A program made the translations under genes and the position numbers. Shown in pieces: positions 5,323 to 17,254 of a stretch of 64,000 nucleotides of DNA. The stretch's first letter is position 1; every line of letters begins with the position of its first letter. Source of the DNA: Oculina patagonica (lineage: Eukaryota); contig NC_135761.1 of the NCBI RefSeq assembly GCF_052425735.1, positions 24,180,001-24,244,000 of the forward strand. Direction: 5' to 3'. The notes beneath the pieces are model-generated. The model had not been told where the DNA came from. It searched no databases and was given only the letters and a program-made list of their open reading frames with translations.

Positions 5323-7064
5323 TTAACAGCACCAACCAGACGCTTGTTGTGTTGTATTTGCTTCCAGCCTTACACTTTGTCGAGCAGATTGGACTCTTTC
5401 ATTAATTTACACAGCGCTTGGCCTCTCGTTTGCGTTGTACAATAAGGCATCAAGAGTGACTTTTCGTTGGGAAGTTGTTACATTCGTGTAAAGCGAAAAT
5501 GTAACTTTGGCATTTGGGTTTCTTGCCATGGCGTACCCAAGACCAACTTTCCCTTCCCAACCAAGGCTGACGAAGACACCGTAAAACCGCTTTCCGCCAA
5601 GCACAATGAAATCCCGCTCAAGGATTGCGAAAAACAGCGTACCAAGGGAAAATACGTCAGCTTTTTCAGGGTAATGGCCAGCGAAAAACTCTGGAGCCAC
5701 CCAGTGTATGGGGCCAATTCCTGAGCTCATGTAGTATTGTGTGTAACTGGTCAGCCATGAACCGTCTTCAGCGTTGGTTCGTTTGAGTGCGGTGTACTCG
5801 CGAGCAAGACCAAAATCAGCCAACTTCACATCCCCCATTGCGGTCAAAAGGACATTATCCGCCTTTAAATCGCGGTGAACCACACCGCGTGAGTGGAGAT
5901 GGGCAAGAGCTTCGGCAATTTGACTCATCCACTTCATATTCGTTTCTGTACTACTCGTCGGGGGTGGAAGAGGAATAATGAATAATGAATAACGGGCTAA
6001 AACAGATAAGGAATATTTAAGGTTCAATGCTTGGAATAATGAATAAGTCATTTCCAGTAAAGGAATAATGAATAGTGGTTATTCACCGTGCTCAAACATT
6101 ATCTTTTATCTTCAGACCAAAGAGAGGGTGGGACACTCAAAATAATTAATTGTATGATGGGCATCTAAAATAGTGCAACACTTTTACCAGAATGTCTAAA
6201 ATAGCGTTTCTGGGGTTCAAAAAATGAAAATTTTCCCGGGGGAGCATGCCCCCGGACCCCCCTACTTTGTTATGTATCAGGCAGCATCAAGTCCATCCCA
6301 ATAACTATCTGGTTGCAAACAATTAAAGCTGACCCACTGTTATCGACACAGTGACAATCACGTCCCATCAATACACTACAGTATTTTTGTTATCACTTTA
6401 AACCGCAATTTTGTGTGATATTCGAAATTTAGCTTGATATGTTGTCATTTTTTGCGTGGAGGGGGGTCATAAAAAAATTAGGATTTACGAAGGGGGGCAG
6501 GGTAAAAATCTCTGATAACGAAGGAGGGCAAACGCATTTTTCAGGCACTGTCGTTCAAATTCTACCCCCATGATCCCATACAAAATGAAGGTTTACTTTA
6601 TTTAGGCAATAGGGAATAATGAATAACAAGAAAAGTCTGAAAATGAATAATGAATAAGTCGTGAAAAATGTGAAGGAATAATGAATAAGTCAGTTCCAAT
6701 AATTCCTCTTCCACCCCCGATACTCGCTCGATCAAGACACTCGTTTAAACTTCCGCCCGAGCAGTACTCAGTCAAAAGCAGCATGTGTACGCGCGCCTTG
6801 TGTATCACGGAACTGATCTGCTCCTATGATGGCGATCACATTCTCGTGGAAGATTTTGTTCAGTGTTGTAGCCTCGCGGATAGCATTACGAAGCGCCGAG
6901 GCATTCCAACAAAGAACATCTTTTAATGCGTAGACTGTGGAACTTGCCTCGTCTTTTACTTTGTATACGACACCAAAAGCGCCATTGCCAAGTCGCTGCT
7001 GGATTCTAACTGTTTTGTTTCCAACGGAAACTCTTGATGGAAGATTTACAGTGGCCTGTTGTAT
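5323..7064 (-). pseudogene. Type-A STK35/PDIK1L-like kinase pseudogene
   Basis: Paralog of 31553-32536 with start ATG>ATA (7062-7064), +4 frameshift near 6790, MITE insertion 5958-6720 and premature TAA at 5407; original GWCC-stop at 5323. Confidence 0.9.
5958..6720. mobile_element. Non-autonomous TIR element (763 bp) inserted in the kinase CDS
   Basis: 19-bp TIR TCGGGGGTGGAAGAGGAAT; 6-bp TSD TACTCG (5952-5957, 6721-6726); empty site in the paralog at ~32197; AATAATGAATA subterminal repeats. Confidence 0.9.
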
Positions 7065-8102
7065 TTTATTAGCTTTTTTCTCTCTTTGTAAAAAGTTACC
7101 AAAGGCGCGACAGAGCTTCGAATGGCTTCTCGGAAAATGCCTGTTTTTGTTGACATCTAGCTTATCGGACGTCTATAAGGGAAAGGAAGGGACGGGATGG
7201 AGCATCAAAACTAATTGCTTTCGAGGAGTCTTTCAACCTACAACTGCGAGTTTCATTGCCTTTAGTTAAGATTAACATTCCGTATAGTTTACTTTAGACA
7301 AAACATTAAAACCATAACCTGGAGAATATATTAAATTTGCCTTTCTCGAAAGTCTTCCTAATTCGAAAACTCTGAGCCACCCTCTCTCACAACAAATTCT
7401 ATTTCTAGGAAACGGCGCTAAATATGATCACGATGCGAAACTAAATAATTAATACGAAATACAGCGTTTCCACGGAAACCCAAAGTCAACATTCCAGTTA
7501 AATTTGAAATGTTGTAATTTGAGATTTTAGTTTTGAGAAATATGCCAGCTTTTGACCTCGAGATATGTAAGTCAGTTTGAGAACTGCCTGCTGGAAAACG
7601 TAAACATTTGACTGCCAAGGCATGTTACTTGCAACTTAGAGATATATAAGGGTTTTGCTGCAGCGGCTTACAAACAGATATGTGCTTCTCAATCCAGTGA
7701 TTTGTTGTTGCTTTTAAAGCACAAGACAATTGAGCCGTCGAGGCGAGACATGCATGACGTGAGGCCGGAAAATATCCATACCCAAATGAAGTCAGAAAGT
7801 AACTCAGAACCAGGAGAGTATTTGCACATGAATAGGCAACAATTCAGGGTGGAAATGAGAAGATGTGAAAGACATCGCCTTAAACGTTGGAAGGGCTGAT
7901 ACTTGTTCGCTTTGGGAAAGAAGATATATCTAGACAAACGAACAAACCAAAAACAAAACAGCTTGATCAGTGTGGTCTAAATACAATTATTTACTTTGTA
8001 ATACTTTATGTTCCACCGTGAAATACAACGGAAATAACATCAATTATAGGGACATGTCAAGTCAAAGTCAGCTCCTGAATCATGTTAAAACTGCCTGCGA
8101 CC

Positions 8103-9065
8103 TCAGAAACAACACCAACCGGGCGCTTCTTTTGTCTTTTTACCTTTCAGCCTTATACTTTCTTGACTAGATTGGACTCTTTTGTGAACTTCCTCAGCGC
8201 TTGGCCTGTCTTTTGCTTTGTACGATAAGGTATCAAGAGTGACTCTTCGTTGGGAAGATGATCCTTGGGTCTCGGGCGAAAACCTTACTTTGATATTTTG
8301 ATTTTGGGACATGGCGTACCCCAGACCAACTTTGCCTTCCTGATCAAGGTGGACAAAGGCACCGTAAAACTGCTTTCCTCCAAAAAAGACGTAATCCCTT
8401 TCCAGAATTGCAAAGAAGATCACTCCAAGCGAAAACACGTCCGCCTTTTCAGTGTAGTGGCCGCTAAATACCTCGGGAGCAATCCAGAACGGTGTGCCAG
8501 CCAATGTGTTCATGTAATACAGCTTGTAAAACGTCAGCCACCCTTTCAACCACCCGTTCACAAGATCCGCGTGCTTGAGTGCAATATACTCTCGTGCCAG
8601 ACCAAAGTCTGCCAATTTTGCCTCTTCTGTGTTTGTAAGCAGCACATTTTCTGGTTTTAGATCACGGTGGACGATGCCATTCTTGTGGAGGTACCTCAGA
8701 GCATCTGCAATTTGACTCATCCACTTCAGGTTCATCTCCTCGCTGCTTCGTCTTGTTAAGCGCTCGTTTAGACTTCCACCGGCACACAACTCAGTTAAAA
8801 TCAGAAAGTGTATTGGGCCATGTTTTTTTGTAGACCAGTCTACGCCTTGGATGGTAATTATGTTCTTGTGGCTGACTACTTTGCAGAGAGACTCGGCCTC
8901 ACTGAGAGCATCCTGAAGACCGCTGTCGTTTTCACAACAAATGTCCTTTAGGGCGAACACTTCCGAGGTAGCTTGGTCTTTGACTTGGTACACGACTCCG
9001 AACGCGCCGTTTCCAAGTGTTTTCTGAATCGTTAAGCCTCTCTCCCCAACCTGAACTTGTTGCAT
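8103..9065 (-). CDS. Type-B STK35/PDIK1L-like Ser/Thr kinase, intronless, 320 aa, polybasic + WCCF tail
   Basis: LGNGAFGVV, FALK, HRDLKPEN, DFG, GTPFWIAPE, GHYTEKADVFSLGVIFFAILER (STK35/PDIK1L-like); ATG at 9065. Confidence 0.88.
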   Translation of the reverse strand: MQQVQVGERGLTIQKTLGNGAFGVVYQVKDQATSEVFALKDICCENDSGLQDALSEAESLCKVVSHKNIITIQGVDWSTKKHGPIHFLILTELCAGGSLNERLTRRSSEEMNLKWMSQIADALRYLHKNGIVHRDLKPENVLLTNTEEAKLADFGLAREYIALKHADLVNGWLKGWLTFYKLYYMNTLAGTPFWIAPEVFSGHYTEKADVFSLGVIFFAILERDYVFFGGKQFYGAFVHLDQEGKVGLGYAMSQNQNIKVRFSPETQGSSSQRRVTLDTLSYKAKDRPSAEEVHKRVQSSQESIRLKGKKTKEAPGWCCF

Positions 9066-9478
9066 TGTTGTCACCGGTCGAAGCTGAGCTTTCTAGGCTT
9101 CTAGTTGCGAGTTTTGATGGAAGCTGTTGTGCCTGCTCGATCAGAGCGGAAGGAGGTATTCTTAGAAAACGAGACACGTGATCGATAACTCGATTGTAAT
9201 CTTGATAAGTAATCAGAGATAGTTGAAATTGTGGATGGCAGGGGTCAATGGGATATTATCGAACTTGGGTTTTCGAGTACAGCAGTCAGCGATTTGGAGG
9301 AATATTTGATTTTCGAAATATTACTTTAAACTACTTTCCAATCTCTTTCCGTCTTCACAGCTGAGATCATACAAAAGCCCATAGTTATAACCTGTTCGCT
9401 AAGGTAGACTGCGAGCATACTCTTTGGAGGACGAACACAAAAGCAAGCGAGAACCAGTCTTGAAAAACGAAGGGTAAA

Positions 9479-9550
9479 CGTTGCGGTAAGAAGCACATTA
9501 TCCGCCTTCAAATCGCGGTGAACCACTCCGTGTGAGTAGAGATGGGCAAG
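9479..9550 (-). pseudogene. Kinase catalytic-loop fragment
   Basis: LAHLYSHGVVHRDLKADNVLLTAT; flanked by unrelated DNA and the minisatellite/P element. Confidence 0.8.
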
Positions 9551-9593
9551 CGATTGTTGGGGCAAAGGCTGCGATTTTAGGGGCAAAAGCAGC
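9545..9593. repeat. ~21-bp minisatellite (GGCAAAGGCTGCGATTGTTGG), left part
   Basis: 2-3 degenerate units; the array continues at 15613-15722 on the other side of the P element. Confidence 0.75.
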
Positions 9594-9669
9594 GATAGTT
9601 AGTAGAGGAGACTGGTTATGAAACGCGGTTAACATCAAAGGCCGATGTCTTTGTTATGGTTTTCCCTTA

Positions 9670-9710
9670 GTCACATGATCTTGACCGTGCACAAGAAAAT
9701 CAACATGGCG
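9670..9710 (+). promoter_or_regulatory. Left subterminal promoter-like module (E-box-like GTCACATGA + TGACCGTGCACAAG + YY1-like CAACATGGCG)
   Basis: Inverted copy of the module at 15467-15508; lies ~110 bp upstream of the THAP ATG; function inferred. Confidence 0.5.
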
Positions 9711-10414
9711 ATCGGAGTTACGTGAATGTGCGGAGAATTACGCTGTATTTTGCCGGATTTTTAGCTTAGATTAGTCTCGATTCGATAAATGTTATAGCTA
9801 TATTGTTCATCAGTCGTCATGCCCGGAGATAACTGCGCTGTATTTGGCTGTGGGAGTTGTAGAAGAACGAAAGGGATCGGTATTTGGAAGTTGCCCGCGG
9901 CGAAGGACGAGGCACACAAGAAATGGCGGGACGATTGGTTGAGTGAGATCACAAAGACGCGTGAGATCGACCATGAATTTCGAAAAAGGATCGAAAATGA
10001 CAAGGTGTTTACCTGTGAAAAACACTTCGACGTTGAAGATTTCGAAATATGTAAGTACGGCTACGATATACAGTAGAAATTGAAGATATGCTCTCGCTTG
10101 CCATATGGTTTTGTTTACGATCTCTGTGAAATTTTCTTGAATGTTAATTTTCATCTTTCTTATTTGTGTTCTACTTTATTTCCAAATGCAGTTCAAACGG
10201 CGAAAATGACGAAGAAGAAACCACGATTCGGCGCCATCCCAAGATTAAACATGCCAAGGAAAAGTCACGAAGCTGCAAAGCCTACACCAAGACCTGCTCG
10301 ATCGGTTGTCAAGGAGCACGATCAACAACCCAAGGCATGTTACAAGTCGTTTAGTGAATTGTGCCAGCGAATCACTGGCTTGAAAACCCTGAAAGGTTGG
10401 AAATTTAAAACAAT

Positions 10415-10578
10415 TCTCTATTTTCCAATTGCCCATAATGCACTTTGTTTGCCCCCCAAATTTTGCATAAACTATTGTTTTGGAAATATGCAGTCCTCCC
10501 AAGAGAATTTGAAAACAATAGTTTATGCAAAATTTGGGGGGCAAACAAAGTGTATTATGGGCAATTGGAAAATAGAGA
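10415..10578. mobile_element. Palindromic MITE (164 bp) inside transposase exon 2
   Basis: TCTCTATTTTCCAATTGCCCATAAT... long inverted arms; AT duplicated on both sides. Confidence 0.88.
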
Positions 10579-12597
10579 ATGGCAGACAGACTTATTATGA
10601 AAAAGACTGTAGAACCTTTCCTTCTCCCGGAAGTAGAAATTATGATCGATGACAGTCTTGCATACACTGTGAAAGCTTTTGGTTGTTATCTTCCTGAAGA
10701 TCATCCCCTCTATGTTACTCACCAGCGTTCAGTCAGAAACATTTCAGTATGTGAAATTGTTAAAGAGCTGGAGTGCTATAAACTTTGCTGTGGAGTGGAA
10801 GCCAGTGAATTAACAAGCCAGCTGTTTCATCACGTAATTCCCATAAATGAAGACTCACTTCAGGTATGTGAGCATGGTGAACAGTTTCCCAACAAAGGTT
10901 TCTGGCGGTCAAAGGGCTGCCATCTCATGTGCGAAAAAGAAGTTGGGGAAGATGCATGCCCACAATGTTTGGAGTACCTGGTTTCCTCAAGAAAGCCCAT
11001 AAAAGCAAAGGAAAGGCGGCTCTCCAAACCTGCAAGTGTCAAGGCACCAGTATCAAAAACTGATCCGGAAAGAATTAAACTGACATTACAACAACAAAGA
11101 CTGAAATGTGCCGAACTTGAGCGAGAGCTAAATGAAATGCGAGCGGCAATTGTCAAAACAAACATTGAAGTCGATCATGAACTTAGCAACGACTTCACTA
11201 AAATCCTCAATGAGGCTGATGACAACATCACTCCTTTCATGAGCCTTTTCTGGCAGCAACAGAAAAAACTTTTCTCCAGCAGTCGTACTGGGGTGCGATA
11301 CCATCCAATGATCATCAGGTTTTGTCTTTCACTTGCTGCTAAGTCACCTTCATGTTACGAAGAGCTTAGAAATAGTAAAGTGTTGGTACTCCCAAGTCAG
11401 CGACGACTGAAAGATTATCGAAATGCCATTCGGCCACAACGTGGATTCCAAGAGGAAATTGTTCAGGAGTTGAACTCCTTAACTGACACATACTTTGATG
11501 TTCAAAGATATGTGGTTCTTTTGTTTGACGAGATGAAAGTCATGTCAAACCTTGTTTTGGACAAGATAACAGGAGAACTGATCGGTTTTACTGATCTTGG
11601 AGACTTGGAACTGAACTATGCTGTTTTGGAAAAAGTCAATGAAATTGCAACACATGCTCTTGCCTTTCTGGTTCGTGGAGTGTGCACTGACCTCAAGTTC
11701 TGCCTTGCACATTTTGCCACAACTGGTGTTACTTCTGCACAACTAATGCTCTTGTTTTGGGAAGCTGTTTGTATATTAGAAACTAGTTGCAATCTGTGGG
11801 TCATTGCTGCCACATCTGATGGTGCTTCACCAAATAGGAGGTTTTACCACCTTCACAAACCCCTTGATGGAGATGCAGGCACTGATGTGTGTTATCGTGC
11901 AGTTAACATTTTTGCACCTCATCGCTTTGTCTACTTCCTCTCTGATGCCCTGCACCTAGTCAAAACAACACGGAACTGTCTCATGCACTCTGGATCTGGA
12001 AAATGTACCCGATATATGTGGAATGATGGGCAGTATTTATTGTGGCAGCACATCACAGAGATTTTCTATCAGGATGTGGACAATGGCTTAAAGCTGTTGC
12101 CTAGGCTGTCGTATGAGCATGTACACCTGACCGCGTATTCTGTCATGCGGGTGAATCTTGCTGCACAAGTCCTGAGTGCATCAGTTGCTGCAGTTCTGAA
12201 GACATTTGGACCTCCAGAGACATCAGCAACTGCAAAACTCTGCGAAATGGTCGATGGCTTCTTTGATTGTCTCAATGTGAGAAGCACGACAGAACATCAG
12301 AGAAAGCGCAAACCATTATTGGCTCCTTATACTTCTGTTGATGACGAAAGGTGTGTTGTTGATTTTTTTATTTTAAATTTTGTTTAATTTATAAAGTATT
12401 ATTTAGCAAAATGGGTATAAAATCATCGATTGTAAATGGTTTCTTTATATATAGTGCTTTATTCAGAATTTACAAATCCTGAAAAGGAGGGCCCAGAGGT
12501 TATCCCGATTAGAATATTTATTTTGCTTTAAAAAAGCTTCTGTTTAATTAGTATTAATCAATTAAAGCTACTTAGATGCATTTGTATAATGGAGTAC

Positions 12598-12843
12598 CAG
12601 GGCTCGAAAAAAACTTGAATTCCAACTTGCCCATAGGGCAAGTAACTCTCAAACTTTGCTTGCCCGGGCACTCCCCCCCCCCCCCTGCCCAGGCTCTCAA
12701 ACTAATTAATAATTCATGAAATTAAGTTAATTGATGGTTTGCCTGGGCCCTTGCCCTTCGGGCAAGTAAGCATGAAAAGTCACTTGCCTGGCAGGAAAAT
12801 CCACTTGTCCCGGACGACCGGACAGGGGTTTTGGTGAGCCCTG
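12598..12843. mobile_element. Small TIR element in transposase intron 2
   Basis: CAGGGCTC...GAGCCCTG termini, AGTAC on both flanks, internal ACTTGCCC repeats. Confidence 0.7.
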
Positions 12844-13969
12844 AGTACTAATGATGTGGAAGTATCTTTTTATGTTGCCTTATCCATGTCAAGAAACAGT
12901 AATTAATGACTTTTCTTTTATTTCTTAGATTTGCATGGTTGATGGAGTTCCTAGACTATCTGAGGACTTGGAAAGAGAATGTTGACAACAGACCCGGTAA
13001 CTTCACCCAGAATGCCAGAAACCGAATGTTTCTCTCATGGCAGACATATGAGGGCTTCCAAATATCTGTACATTCTGCTGTTGAAGTAACAAGATTTTTG
13101 CTTCAGGAAGGGTTTGAATTTGTCCTCACAGAACGGTTCTGCCAGGATCCAGTAGAGGAGTACTTCGGGGGCCAGCGGAAACTGGGTAGGCGCAGTGACA
13201 ACCCTGACATAAAAACATTTGGGTATAACAGTAACACACTAAGAATGCAGAGAACAGTGTCCTGTCAGAGTGGCAACACAAGGGGCCGAAAGGACAAGAC
13301 ACGAGCTTGGGAACAAGTTACTGGTGTTAAGTTACCATGTAGAACAAAACTGAAACTGTAGTCAATTAAGTCATTTCAGTATTTCATCATTGAGGAGATT
13401 AATCACATAGCATCCAGTGTACATTTTGTATTATACACTGTACATGTACTGTAGATACAATTATTTCATGTCATTTGACAAAGATTTTTTAGTGCTTTTT
13501 AAATAAGTAAGGTTTCTTGAAAGTTGAATTATGTGGTAATTCTGTAATGTAACCAATAAATACAGAGACCATTAAGGAGAATTTTTTTTTGATCATTCAA
13601 AGTGAAAATACTTGTCAAGAACAGCTTGCAGTTGTGTTTCATTATGACTGTGCTTGTGAGTGCAAATGGTAATTATTAAGTGTAACAAGGAAATACAAGG
13701 AGACCATTAAGGTGAATTTTTGTATTGAACAGCTTGCAGTTGTGTTTCATCGCGACAGAGCATATAAAACAAGAAATATAATTTATTAAAGATCCATAAG
13801 TTCTTATAATCTATCTCACTGATAACTTGAATGAATTTCATTGTTTTACCAAACCTGAATCAAAGTTTAAAAAATTTCAGAGTTAACATGGCATTTATTG
13901 TCCTCGCTGCAAATGGTGGTTCTGATCACAATGTACTAATAAAGAAATCAAAAATGTGAATTAACAGTC

Positions 13970-15472
13970 TTATTCCTGCCTTTGTTGGTCATCACCTTGA
14001 CAACTTCTACTAATTTCCTTGCGTAAAGCCTTTGCTTTGGTTTTAGTTGCCTTGATCTCGTAATGCTGAATGATATCCTTGGCAAAAGAGAATGAACGTA
14101 CATGTACATACAGACTTATAATGCCACGCAAGACATCCTTACAAACATGACTGTCCGGTTCAAGTTCTGCATCTGATACCATCAAATTGTAATAAGCAAG
14201 GATGTCACTATCACTGGTTGCTTTGTTAGTGATGCCAGAAAGATCTAATCTTTGCAAGTCAGGCTTTGATGTGAACTGCCTAAAATGAATTTCTGCTTTT
14301 AAAAAAATTTGCTGTGCAGGCTGAGTGATTGACCAAAGTCCCCCACGGTTCAAGGCTGACACACGTTTTTGGCTAGAGTCAGTTATGCTCTCCAGTTTCC
14401 CAGCTTTCAGTATTGCCATAGCTTGTTGGCTCTCCACTGAGTTAGTTCGTCCATGTTTTTTGTGTAAGTTGTGCAGAACATAACCTCCAAGATATTGCAT
14501 CCCAGCTTTTTCCTTATCTGACAACACAGTTTTTATATGATGACTGCTTTCGGTAGAGTGTTTTTGTTGCTTAGAGTATGCCAGCAAACAGTCAGCAACT
14601 TTGGTTGCCAGTAGTGTTGCTGCATTTCTAGAAATTCCACTGAAGAATTGGGTAAACTTTGCAGCAACTGTTGCATAATATTTGCCATAAAACTTTTCTG
14701 CATCTCCATTTCTTGCATATCCTTCATAGATTGCTTTGATAGCAGAGAATTCATTGCTGTCTTCTTGTAGCTGTTGGTATGAGTAATTGCTAAGCTCAGT
14801 CCTTAAATTTCCTGCAAAAACTTTCCTTTCCTTAACATTGCGGACAGCACGGTCAACTATTTCTGCCAGAACATTTGGGCTTAACTGTTGCACCTGCTCC
14901 AATTCTGCCTGTTGATTGTTGTGTTTTGCAGCCCTGTGTCTCTCATAACCTCCTCTTGTTTTGTACTTCTTTCCGCAGTCATTACAAACAATTTCTTGAC
15001 GCTGAGCCTACAAAGATATCACAAACATTACCATTGTAACATAAATAAACTACATGTATATACTTAAGAGTTTGAAAATAAAAATTCGGTGGCCACACAA
15101 AGTTTATCACTTGAAATAATTTCGACAAATCGCTACATTCCGAAGCTTTGAGCTCTTTAGAAGCTTTACATAAGTCTTCCTTGTTTCGCAGGAGCGCTAA
15201 AGAAAGTCGCATTAGAAGAAACAGCAATATATAAGCATAGTTTTTACGCGAGCGTTTGTTGAATTTCGTTTGTTTACACTCGTCGAGTAGCCTATCGTGG
15301 CAAATTTAAGCTCAGTAGTGCGAAATTACAACTCGAAATTGCAACTTTCTCAACTTACATTTCTAACTGCGACGGAAAATTGTTCCTCTACTTCTTCATC
15401 GTCTTCCAAAATACCCAAGATCGCTTCAAAATCTTCTCCCCATACAAACAAACCGTCTCCACCGTCCGCCAT
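13970..15472 (-). CDS. Second P-element gene: acidic N-terminus + C2H2 zinc finger + P-transposase C-terminal-like domain; exons 15472-15359 and 15007-13970, ~383 aa
   Basis: Exon 1 [38 protein letters not shown]|gtaagt; acceptor tttgtag|GCT in phase 0; [22 protein letters not shown] zinc finger; [13 protein letters not shown]...NRGGL motifs; open to stop at 13970. Confidence 0.8.
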
Positions 15473-15508
15473 CTTGAATGAACTTGTGCACGGTCAGAGT
15501 CACGTGAC
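15467..15508 (-). promoter_or_regulatory. Right subterminal promoter-like module (GTCACGTGAC + TGACCGTGCACAAG + CAAGATGGCG containing the gene-2 ATG)
   Basis: Mirror of 9670-9710; function inferred. Confidence 0.5.
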
Positions 15509-15612
15509 GGGTCTGTTCAACATCGCCGACCGCGCTATTGTTTAACCCTTTGATGTTTACCGGGTTTCACAACCAGTCTCCTCTACTAACTATGCCTCTA
15601 CTAACTATGTTG

Positions 15613-15722
15613 TGGCAAAGGCTCCGATTGTCGAGGCAAAAGCTGCGATTGATGTGCATGGCAAAGGCTGCGATTGTTGGGCAAAGGCTGCGATTTTTGG
15701 GGCAAAAGCTGCGATTGTTGGG
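15613..15722. repeat. ~21-bp minisatellite, right part
   Basis: ~5 units of GGCAAA(G/A)GCTGCGATT(G/T)TTGG. Confidence 0.8.
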
Positions 15723-15740
15723 ATAAGTGTCGTTGTTAAA

Positions 15741-16250
15741 GAATCAGACAAATGCTCATGACTCGTCAAAAATCTTTTAAGCACTTAGTCGATCACTTGA
15801 GGCGTACTGCAAAGCCTTTAGAACGACTCTTTACAGAGCGTTGGACCTGTCTCTTTTAACTTGAGAACGCAATTCGGATACGACGACCAACCGTTTCCAT
15901 TGGAAGCCCAAGGCCAAACTTTCCTACACAAAGGCACCGTAAAATGCTTTCCCATCAATCACGATGAAATCCCGCTCAAGGATTGCGAAATACAGCGTAC
16001 CAAGGGAAAATACGTCGGCCCTTTCTGTGTAATTGGTTAATGAAAAATTCTGGAGCAACCCAGTGTATGGGGCCAGTTCCTGAGCTCATGTAGTCCGTGT
16101 TAGTAACTTGCCAGCCATAAACCGTCGTCTTCTTGGGCTTGGGTTAGTTTGAGTGCGGTGTACTCGCGAGCGAGGCCAAAATCAGCCAATTTCACTCCTC
16201 CGTGGCGGCAAGAAGCACATTATCCGCCTTCAAATCGCGGTGAACCACTC
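15741..16250 (-). pseudogene. C-terminal half of a type-A' kinase, degenerate
   Basis: VVHRDLKADN...DFGLARE...GTGPIHWVAPEF...ADVFSLGTLYFAILERDF with small indels and an in-frame stop; closest to 35655-36569. Confidence 0.85.
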
Positions 16251-17254
16251 AGTTCAGTTATACCGACAGATTTAGTTTCCACCCTGATAAATAATGCTTT
16301 TTCCTAGCAGTCGAGAACGTGTGGACCGTTTCGCGAAATTGAGGCCAAAATAATGGAAATTTAGGCATGTTAGGTCATGAAATTAACGCTTTGCATAATT
16401 AACGGTGTAGACTTTCTCAAGGTCCTTCGACGCGCGATTTAGGCATGTCACGTTAATTTCCTATAGTAAGGTAAATAAGATGCGTCTCAAATATGACATG
16501 AATAAGAGCCTTGAATACATGCACTAGTGGAATTTTGTACGGCCAGTTTGCATTTAATAATTGTAAAGTTTTCAGTTGAGCACATTTAAAAAACTCAGCA
16601 CGCTTCCAAAACTCAATAATTAAATAAAACTAATGTAATATTTCTTGTAACATTAATGAACAATTAGACGCAAACAAGTCCATGACTCATTAATTTGTAG
16701 GAGCAATTCCAAGTCTTAAAGAACCCTGTTCTTGACGCATCCTGTTTTTGATCCACTTTGTTTTTGTCGTCAGGCGGGATTTCATACCATGTCCCCACAA
16801 TTATTTCAGATCTTATTGACCTAAACCATTTGCCATAATTATAACTTCCTTTAATCAGGTTACAAAGTGAATATGCCTGTAGCCACGAGCGTTCAATTTT
16901 TTCGTGTTTGCGTTGTAATTAGTTTTAATTCTCGTCAGTATTTTGTTCGGTTTTTTTGGTTTCTTTGTTAAGCGTAGCTCATTATTGCCCCCGCAGGGTT
17001 TTGGCCCAGAGGCCAAAACCCGAGGAGGCATCATTGAAGTCCCCGCGTGTATATATATAAGGGATTAAAAAATAGAAGATATATGAAGAAATATACAAGA
17101 AATGTATGGTAGTATGCGAGGCGATCCCGATTTGAAGAAACTAGGCGCGCACGGTGGTCTCGGTTAATTTTGCGGCAAGCACGCAAGGTGTTTTGGGTGT
17201 TTTCGCCGCCATACTGCGAGCAACAAGTTGAAGATTTGCGACTCAAACGTCTCA

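Follow-up and report, generated by a model that had tools for sequence, protein, structure and literature searches.

Whether a P transposon must carry its whole transposase on one polypeptide is the question raised by a 6-kb element in the genome of Oculina patagonica. Among transposons, P elements are a textbook example, and to our knowledge all those described make one multi-domain transposase. The element lies at 9595-15593 of the 64,000-nucleotide stretch of DNA analysed here (NCBI RefSeq assembly GCF_052425735.1, contig NC_135761.1, positions 24,180,001 to 24,244,000 of the forward strand), which is referred to below as the window. One pair of terminal inverted repeats (TIRs) encloses two convergent genes, of which gene 1 encodes a P-type transposase and gene 2 a zinc-finger protein. 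A preliminary description of the sequence proposed that the C-terminal domain (CTD) of the P transposase is encoded here by the separate, convergent zinc-finger gene, and this proposal is supported by the fold match, the family profiles and the gene linkage reported below. The architecture and the homology are thereby supported, and a joint enzymatic function of the two products is plausible. For the mechanism as a whole, a heteromeric two-protein transposase whose assembly, requirement for gene 2 and use of the finger we infer, the probability is put at about 0.65.

The two genes and their products

Gene 1 lies on the plus strand and comprises three exons with canonical splice sites, the second of which is interrupted by a miniature inverted-repeat transposable element (MITE).

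9819-10050, plus strand: transposase exon 1, THAP zinc finger (PF05485), followed by a GTAAGT donor at 10051
10192-12350, plus strand: transposase exon 2, with linker, helix-turn-helix, N-terminal part of the RNase H domain and GTP-binding insertion domain (GBD); frame broken by the MITE
10413-10580: palindromic MITE-like insertion of 168 bp, with 69-nt arms that are 99% complementary and 30 nt apart
12929-13361, plus strand: transposase exon 3, with C-terminal part of the RNase H domain, catalytic glutamate, conserved basic tail and stop

The THAP domain is matched by PF05485 at an E-value of 4.8e-5 (24.5 bits, against a Pfam cut-off of 23.9), and its CX4C...CX2H signature is legible in exon 1. 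Exon 2 matches PF21787 TNP-like RNaseH_N (E 9.5e-21) and PF21788 TNP-like GBD (E 2.6e-16), in addition to a weak match to PF12017, and aligns to chain 6p5a_A with the FDEMKV stretch included. In exon 3, the stretch QDPVEEYFG aligns to the region of the catalytic residue E531 of 6p5a_A (residues 510-556).

A comparison with the intact 882-residue coral relative P0138 reveals that the four coding pieces of gene 1 are colinear with this protein at 61-75% identity, matching its residues 1-77, 78-152, 155-738 and 739-880; the identity is 71% for exon 1 (residues 1-77) and 75% for exon 3 (residues 739-880). The MITE, which had been proposed to break the transposase frame, sits exactly at the break between residues 152 and 155 of P0138, and both this comparison and its inverted-repeat structure indicate that it is real. 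Because the MITE breaks exon 2, the window copy is unable to make transposase; gene 2 is intact. No further copy of the 168-bp MITE is present in the window. The second transposase intron contains, at 12560-12840, an insert of approximately 280 bp composed of repeated CTTGCCC...GGGCAAG hairpin units plus a C-run, which is probably another small non-autonomous element.

The transposase was described as ending soon after the catalytic glutamate, and its stop codon (13359-13361) indeed lies 67 residues past it. Eleven complete relatives of 803-899 residues, including those of corals, a sea anemone and a sea cucumber, end 64-68 residues after the catalytic glutamate and share a basic-rich tail; the full-length relatives, at 881-899 residues, all have this end point. 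Neither PF12596 nor PF21789 is found in the window transposase and its 120 best relatives. A hidden downstream exon that would add a CTD to the transposase is not indicated, because several relatives are single uninterrupted open reading frames; the intronless transposases of Holothuria and of the loci L016-L018 terminate at the same point, after the same conserved tail. In an alignment to the fly enzyme, the end of gene 1 comes shortly after the final helix of the RNase H domain, at the point from which the Drosophila protein continues into its flexible linker to the CTD. To judge from these comparisons, the absence of the CTD from gene 1 is a trait of the family and not a defect of the window copy.

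Gene 2 lies on the minus strand, with the following features (residue numbers of its domains count along the 345-residue exon 2; pLDDT is the predicted local distance difference test score of the structural model described below).

15359-15472, minus strand: gene 2 exon 1, a 38-residue acidic peptide, followed by a GTAAGT donor
13970-15007, minus strand: gene 2 exon 2, an open frame of 345 residues plus stop
14921-14989, minus strand: single C2H2 zinc finger, residues 7-29
14543-14890, minus strand: predicted N-terminal helical domain, residues 40-155, helices at pLDDT 81-90
14051-14530, minus strand: putative CTD-equivalent domain, residues 160-319, matching 6p5a_B
13994-14050, minus strand: conserved basic helix after the CTD-like domain, helical in the model

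The spliced minus-strand gene of 383 residues (15472-13970) recognised in the preliminary description is recovered as 38 residues of exon 1 and 345 of exon 2, separated by a 351-nt GT..AG intron in phase 0 (15358-15008). The acidic peptide, the finger CNDC...HRAAKH and the motifs QYLGGYV and NRGGLW named there are all present. The predicted splice is supported by conservation, by homologue gene models and by an intronless relative: annotated homologues from six genera of corals and anemones retain the acidic peptide, an intron lies at the same place in gene models of Actinia and Oculina, and the distant intronless relative joins the peptide, the finger and the helical domains in one open reading frame. 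RNA sequencing runs contain a fraction of 0.32-0.53 of the sampled words of 12900-15500, in which an RNA origin and a DNA origin are indistinguishable.

The finger matches zf-C2H2 at E 0.0018, which is under the Pfam cut-off; 55 of 99 relatives match this family, and residues C8, C11, H24 and H29 are invariant across 20 homologues. The motifs QYLGGYV and NRGGLW and the basic C-terminal stretch are likewise invariant or nearly so among gene 2 homologues, and in the basic helix (residues 320-338) K324, K326, R329, K330 and R334 are almost invariant. The family comprises 353 clusters at 90% identity in a word-based search and 2890 representatives at 50% identity in an exhaustive search, and the best 150 of these 2890 are all stand-alone proteins of 136-442 residues. 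In another Oculina element (locus L003), the gene 2 intron holds an insertion of its own at 8177-9087, with 59-nt inverted repeats that are 95% complementary.

The structure of the exon 2 protein was modelled with AlphaFold2 from a 20-sequence alignment without templates (mean pLDDT 79.6). After the finger, the model is all-helical, with domains at residues 40-155 and 160-338 and a disordered stretch between them. In a Foldseek search of 350,542 PDB chains, a check suggested by the preliminary description, the first-ranked match is 6p5a_B (probability 1.00, template-modelling score 0.66 by target), which is the 118-residue CTD of the fly P transposase deposited as a separate chain. VIA-align pairs model residues 160-319 with transposase residues 617-734, covering 116 of the 118 residues at a root-mean-square deviation of 2.6 Å and 21% identity, with a Z of 10.9 (runner-up 7.4). 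A search independent of Foldseek, against 48,161 PDB representatives, yields 6p5a_B as the sole match with a Z of at least 8, the next being at 6.0. Among the 550,129 Swiss-Prot entries of the AlphaFold DB, first place goes to human THAP9 (residues 584-853, probability 0.99), ahead of the fly P transposase in second (residues 467-750, probability 0.92). Additionally, the top four matches of an ESM Atlas shape search are THAP9_C, TNP-like RNaseH_C, GBD or THAP clusters, over residues 149-341. The N-terminal helical domain (residues 40-155) lies outside these THAP9 matches and has no convincing relative, its best structural matches reaching only Z 5-6. An ESM Atlas search by features instead of shape gives finger proteins only when the complete protein is the query; with residues 40-345, the matches are bacterial families of no relation.

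The sequence families of the relatives point in the same direction. Of 99 gene 2 relatives, 33 match PF12596 Tnp_P_element_C, with E-values down to 3.7e-5, and apart from the finger no other family recurs among them; precomputed matches to PF22824 THAP9_C label several relatives, some at E ≤1e-5 and others weakly. A structural match and a profile match to the P CTD, on which the preliminary description had made its proposal depend, are thus both at hand, in 6p5a_B and PF12596 respectively. The C-terminal domain of gene 2 is very likely homologous to the P transposase CTD. The last 17 residues of the Drosophila P CTD are basic (PMC7776569), for which the K/R-rich helix at residues 320-338 of gene 2 is a parallel.

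Gene linkage, proposed mechanism and competing explanations

The convergent pair is present at all seven closely examined loci (eight element copies). At the loci that were sampled from the transposase (Holothuria leucospilota L001 and the distant L016, L017 and L018), a gene 2 homologue lies 0.6-2 kb downstream on the opposite strand; at those sampled from gene 2 (Actinia tenebrosa L002 and Oculina patagonica L003), a transposase occupies the same convergent position. Metagenome contigs were scanned with the gene 2 alignment, and the 32 loci whose sequence continues for 1.3 kb or more beyond gene 2 on its downstream side were counted. A transposase is found on the opposite strand in 24 of them, at a spacing of 68-1690 nt, and none of the 32 has a transposase in any other arrangement; by a tally of identity and spacing, the 24 pairs represent at least 18 distinct lineages. 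Measured against the window copy, the identity of gene 2 rises with that of the last transposase exon, with a Spearman coefficient of 0.88 over 12 distinct pairs that are phylogenetically non-independent.

A survey for TIR-bounded convergent pairs had been proposed earlier, and the layout does recur in corals, anemones and a sea cucumber; the gene 2 homologues, rather than residing mostly outside P elements, adjoin a transposase in most cases with enough flank. As far as these loci allow a judgement, the linkage of the two genes is a long-term, conserved one. Locus L017 contains the two-gene element twice (5844-16441), as neighbouring copies that face in opposite directions with approximately 1 kb between their gene 2 ends.

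In the fly enzyme, helices make up the whole CTD, which a flexible, disordered linker connects to the RNase H domain and which packs against the GBD of another subunit; it touches both transposon and target DNA, and its terminal basic segment is aimed at the target (PMC7776569). Only the full-length fly protein catalyses transposition, and the 66-kDa form without the C-terminal part binds P DNA and represses (PMC7776569). By analogy, a CTD provided as a separate protein appears plausible because the domain already acts across subunits via a floppy tether, and the CTD is resolved as its own chain in 6p5a, which is consistent with supply in trans. On this basis, DNA binding and catalysis are assigned to the gene 1 subunit, and gene 2 is taken to encode the subunit that would contribute the CTD, together with a finger and an extra helical domain.

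The element would thus be a P-superfamily cut-and-paste transposon with its transposase function divided between two genes within one TIR pair. Transcription of each gene would start from a promoter at its own end of the element and run inward as far as the 608-nt spacer. A gene 1 dimer seated on the transposon ends would be joined by the gene 2 protein, whose CTD may occupy the position of the covalently attached CTD in the fly transpososome, flanked by one subunit's RNase H domain and the other subunit's GTP-binding domain and in contact with DNA of both transposon and target; the active heteromeric transposase would thereby be complete. The C2H2 finger would add a second DNA-binding specificity, and, as a guess, the acidic start of the gene 2 protein and the basic tail of the gene 1 protein may replace the covalent linker. 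Gene 2 would in that case encode an obligatory subunit rather than a regulator.

Several observations weigh against this mechanism or against the homology that it presupposes. The gene 2 protein of the window copy itself does not match a Pfam CTD family at E up to 1, PDB sequence searches with this protein and with the 20-sequence profile return zinc fingers only, and a Z of 10.9 is within the range where helical folds may match by arrangement alone. No target-site duplication was found flanking the window copy. The Logan contigs of the nearest relative, P0001, are genome-colinear, with the intron kept, and are uninformative on transcripts; their shared ends fall at branch points between copies. 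In eight of the 32 metagenome loci there is no transposase beside gene 2, and the gene 2 module is not exclusive to P elements, because it is present in helicase-named, fungal and protist proteins. The failure of the sequence-only searches to find a CTD and the weak Foldseek E-values (0.22 in the PDB and 0.013 in Swiss-Prot) could be explained if the resemblance to the CTD were a chance match between helical bundles and gene 2 an unrelated passenger. Such a coincidence is countered, however, by a unique and identical top answer in four separate libraries, by the near-full coverage and 21% identity of the VIA-align superposition, by the agreeing profiles, with PF12596 recurring in a third of the relatives, and by a neighbouring gene that is without exactly this domain. 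A chance resemblance is therefore close to refuted.

The proteins outside P elements bear on another explanation, in which gene 2 comes from an older, independent finger-plus-helical family of several mobile elements and was captured by one P lineage; it would share ancestry with the canonical CTD, no single chain would have been split here, and the two-gene state could be older. AlphaFold DB clusters hold a gene 2-like finger-plus-helical module within proteins of 820-1081 residues that are automatically named ATP-dependent DNA helicase and presumably belong, from their accession prefixes, to Mytilus and Paramuricea; the module also occurs in Rhizophagus and protist proteins. The very large size of the family and an N-terminal helical domain without counterpart in P transposases fit a capture as well. 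However, the helicase names are automatic and the gene models may merge neighbouring elements, so that the fusions may be merged models, or the module may be older and wider than P elements. A sponge P transposase, A0A1X7VWF2, appears to have a gene 2-like region fused (residues 420-682). The examined close and middling relatives with enough flank and any transposase all show the convergent position, and the two genes co-diverge; a captured module is accordingly regarded as decidedly unlikely. Alternatively, gene 2 may be a regulator or targeting factor and the CTD-less transposase self-sufficient; the CTD-like domain would then bind or compete at the transpososome and the finger would bind DNA, so that transposition is restrained or insertion is steered. 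The tight, conserved linkage within the TIRs fits an essential function no less well than a restraining one. Truncated Drosophila P proteins do act as repressors (PMC7776569), gene 2 has a finger and an extra helical domain unlike the canonical CTD, and it diverges faster than the transposase (27-61% versus 45-77% identity to the window copy). Against this stands the fly enzyme, in which transposition is catalysed only by the protein with the C-terminal part (PMC7776569); because no relative of the transposase keeps the CTD, a purely regulatory gene 2 would leave the domain out of the reaction altogether. A regulatory role is possible but unlikely, and the two-protein transposase is preferred.

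Element ends and insertion site

The ends of the element and the spacer between its genes comprise the following features.

9595-9641: left TIR, 47 nt, 94% complementary to 15547-15593
15547-15593: right TIR, paired with 9595-9641, with 5905 nt between the TIRs
9670-9695: left subterminal inverted repeat, upstream of the transposase gene (GTCACATGATC...GTGCACAAG); 26 nt that pair with 15483-15508 at 85% complementarity
15483-15508: right subterminal inverted repeat, 11 nt upstream of the gene 2 ATG at 15472
13362-13969: spacer between the convergent stop codons, 608 nt, with polyadenylation-type signals on both strands

The TIR pair is present as first described, except that it measures 47 nt and not the 48 bp claimed, the extra position being a C/G mismatch. 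The terminus of the left TIR resembles the TIR of the Oculina relative L003 (CAGAGTTAATAGAGGGAGACTGG), and the right end carries its terminal 14 nt twice (15580-15593 and 15595-15608, the second being a partial copy). In the spacer, the signals are AATAAA at 13555 on the plus strand and TTTATT at 13894 and 13782, which corresponds to AATAAA on the minus strand.

The subterminal repeats sit approximately 75-85 nt inside each element end, and their motif reads GTCACGTGA...GTGCACA. In the L003 element, the subterminal repeat is found at both ends (24 nt, 100% complementary), and one copy immediately precedes the gene 2 start. The subterminal inverted repeat of the window element runs on to ATGGCG at both sides (9670-9725 and 15508-15455). 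On the gene 2 side this ATGGCG is the genuine start codon, and its counterpart on the transposase side begins a short upstream reading frame of 6 codons approximately 110 nt ahead of the THAP start; the same pattern is repeated in L003 (7964-8010 and 15241-15190).

The target-site duplication of the P superfamily is 7-8 bp long, and the L003 element, with TIRs of 61 nt at 90%, has a 7-bp duplication, ATTCAAA. The host site of the window element is a 21-nt minisatellite (unit GGCAAAGGCTGCGATTGTTGG), which has the same orientation on both sides (9539-9594 and 15610-15727). Minus-strand protein kinase reading frames or fragments with HRDLK catalytic-loop and DVFSLG motifs flank the element at 8103-9586 and 15924-16058. 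A second copy of gene 1 or gene 2 was sought within the window, and none was found.

Relation to known systems and implications

The element shares with the P superfamily the THAP domain, the RNase H/GBD core and the TIRs and differs in that the CTD is on the other polypeptide. GTP is a cofactor in the P superfamily, and the presence of the GBD is what the sequence shows in this respect. Drosophila P and human and zebrafish THAP9 are single-chain proteins, whereas the putative CTD comes here from a convergent gene that starts near the opposite TIR and places an acidic peptide, a C2H2 finger and another helical domain ahead of the CTD. Where the Drosophila P and THAP9 proteins continue with a linker and the CTD, the catalytic protein finishes here with a short conserved basic tail. 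The 66-kDa Drosophila P repressor, in which the third intron is retained, keeps the THAP domain and is without the C-terminal part, as is gene 1. It is truncated near residue 576, which is close to the end of the coral transposase when the latter is aligned to 6p5a_A. In the fly, the missing part is restored by germline splicing of the same transcript, whereas here it would come as a separate protein.

Two genes within one TIR pair are known from other superfamilies. PIF/Harbinger elements have two open reading frames (PMC5543537), one for a catalytic protein and one for a DNA-binding partner, which provides a working analogy for a eukaryotic cut-and-paste system of two proteins. The PIF/Harbinger proteins are unrelated to those described here, and the partner is Myb/SANT-like, not a detached piece of the transposase fold, in contrast to the gene 2 protein, whose CTD belongs to the enzyme itself in other P-superfamily members; a PIF/Harbinger-type element is ruled out by the P-type transposase and by the second protein, with its C2H2 finger and P-type CTD. 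RAG-like elements (ProtoRAG) resemble the present element in having convergent RAG1-like and RAG2-like genes inside the TIRs (PMC7204232). ProtoRAG is without homology to the element, however, and its RAG2-like protein is a Kelch-type partner, not a detached transposase domain. KolobokP is likewise a recently described lineage of a known superfamily with a second gene, but its second protein is an added His-Me finger endonuclease, not a domain removed from the transposase (PMC9587614). A two-gene P element was not found in the full-text literature, a search that did not cover Repbase and Dfam, where such an element may already have been catalogued.

The direction of the change may also be the reverse of a split. 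It is conceivable, and rather unlikely, that the two-gene layout came first in the P superfamily and that the single-chain Drosophila P and THAP9 proteins arose by joining the CTD to the catalytic gene. If so, the splicing-controlled last exon of the fly gene would be the remnant of a once separate, separately regulated subunit, and P core proteins would cut DNA or merely bind it under the control of an exchangeable module, the P CTD.

The lineage is large and widespread, occurring in corals, sea anemones and a sea cucumber and in thousands of protein clusters. With the CTD supplied by a second gene, the two-protein transposase would constitute a natural separation-of-function experiment that permits a direct test of the role of the CTD. 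It would also permit a test of whether a CTD-less P protein represses as the 66-kDa fly form does and whether the added zinc finger alters end recognition or target choice. The P superfamily would become one of the few eukaryotic cut-and-paste superfamilies that include two-protein systems, and a large protein family of cnidarian genomes, unannotated beyond "C2H2-type domain-containing", would be explained.

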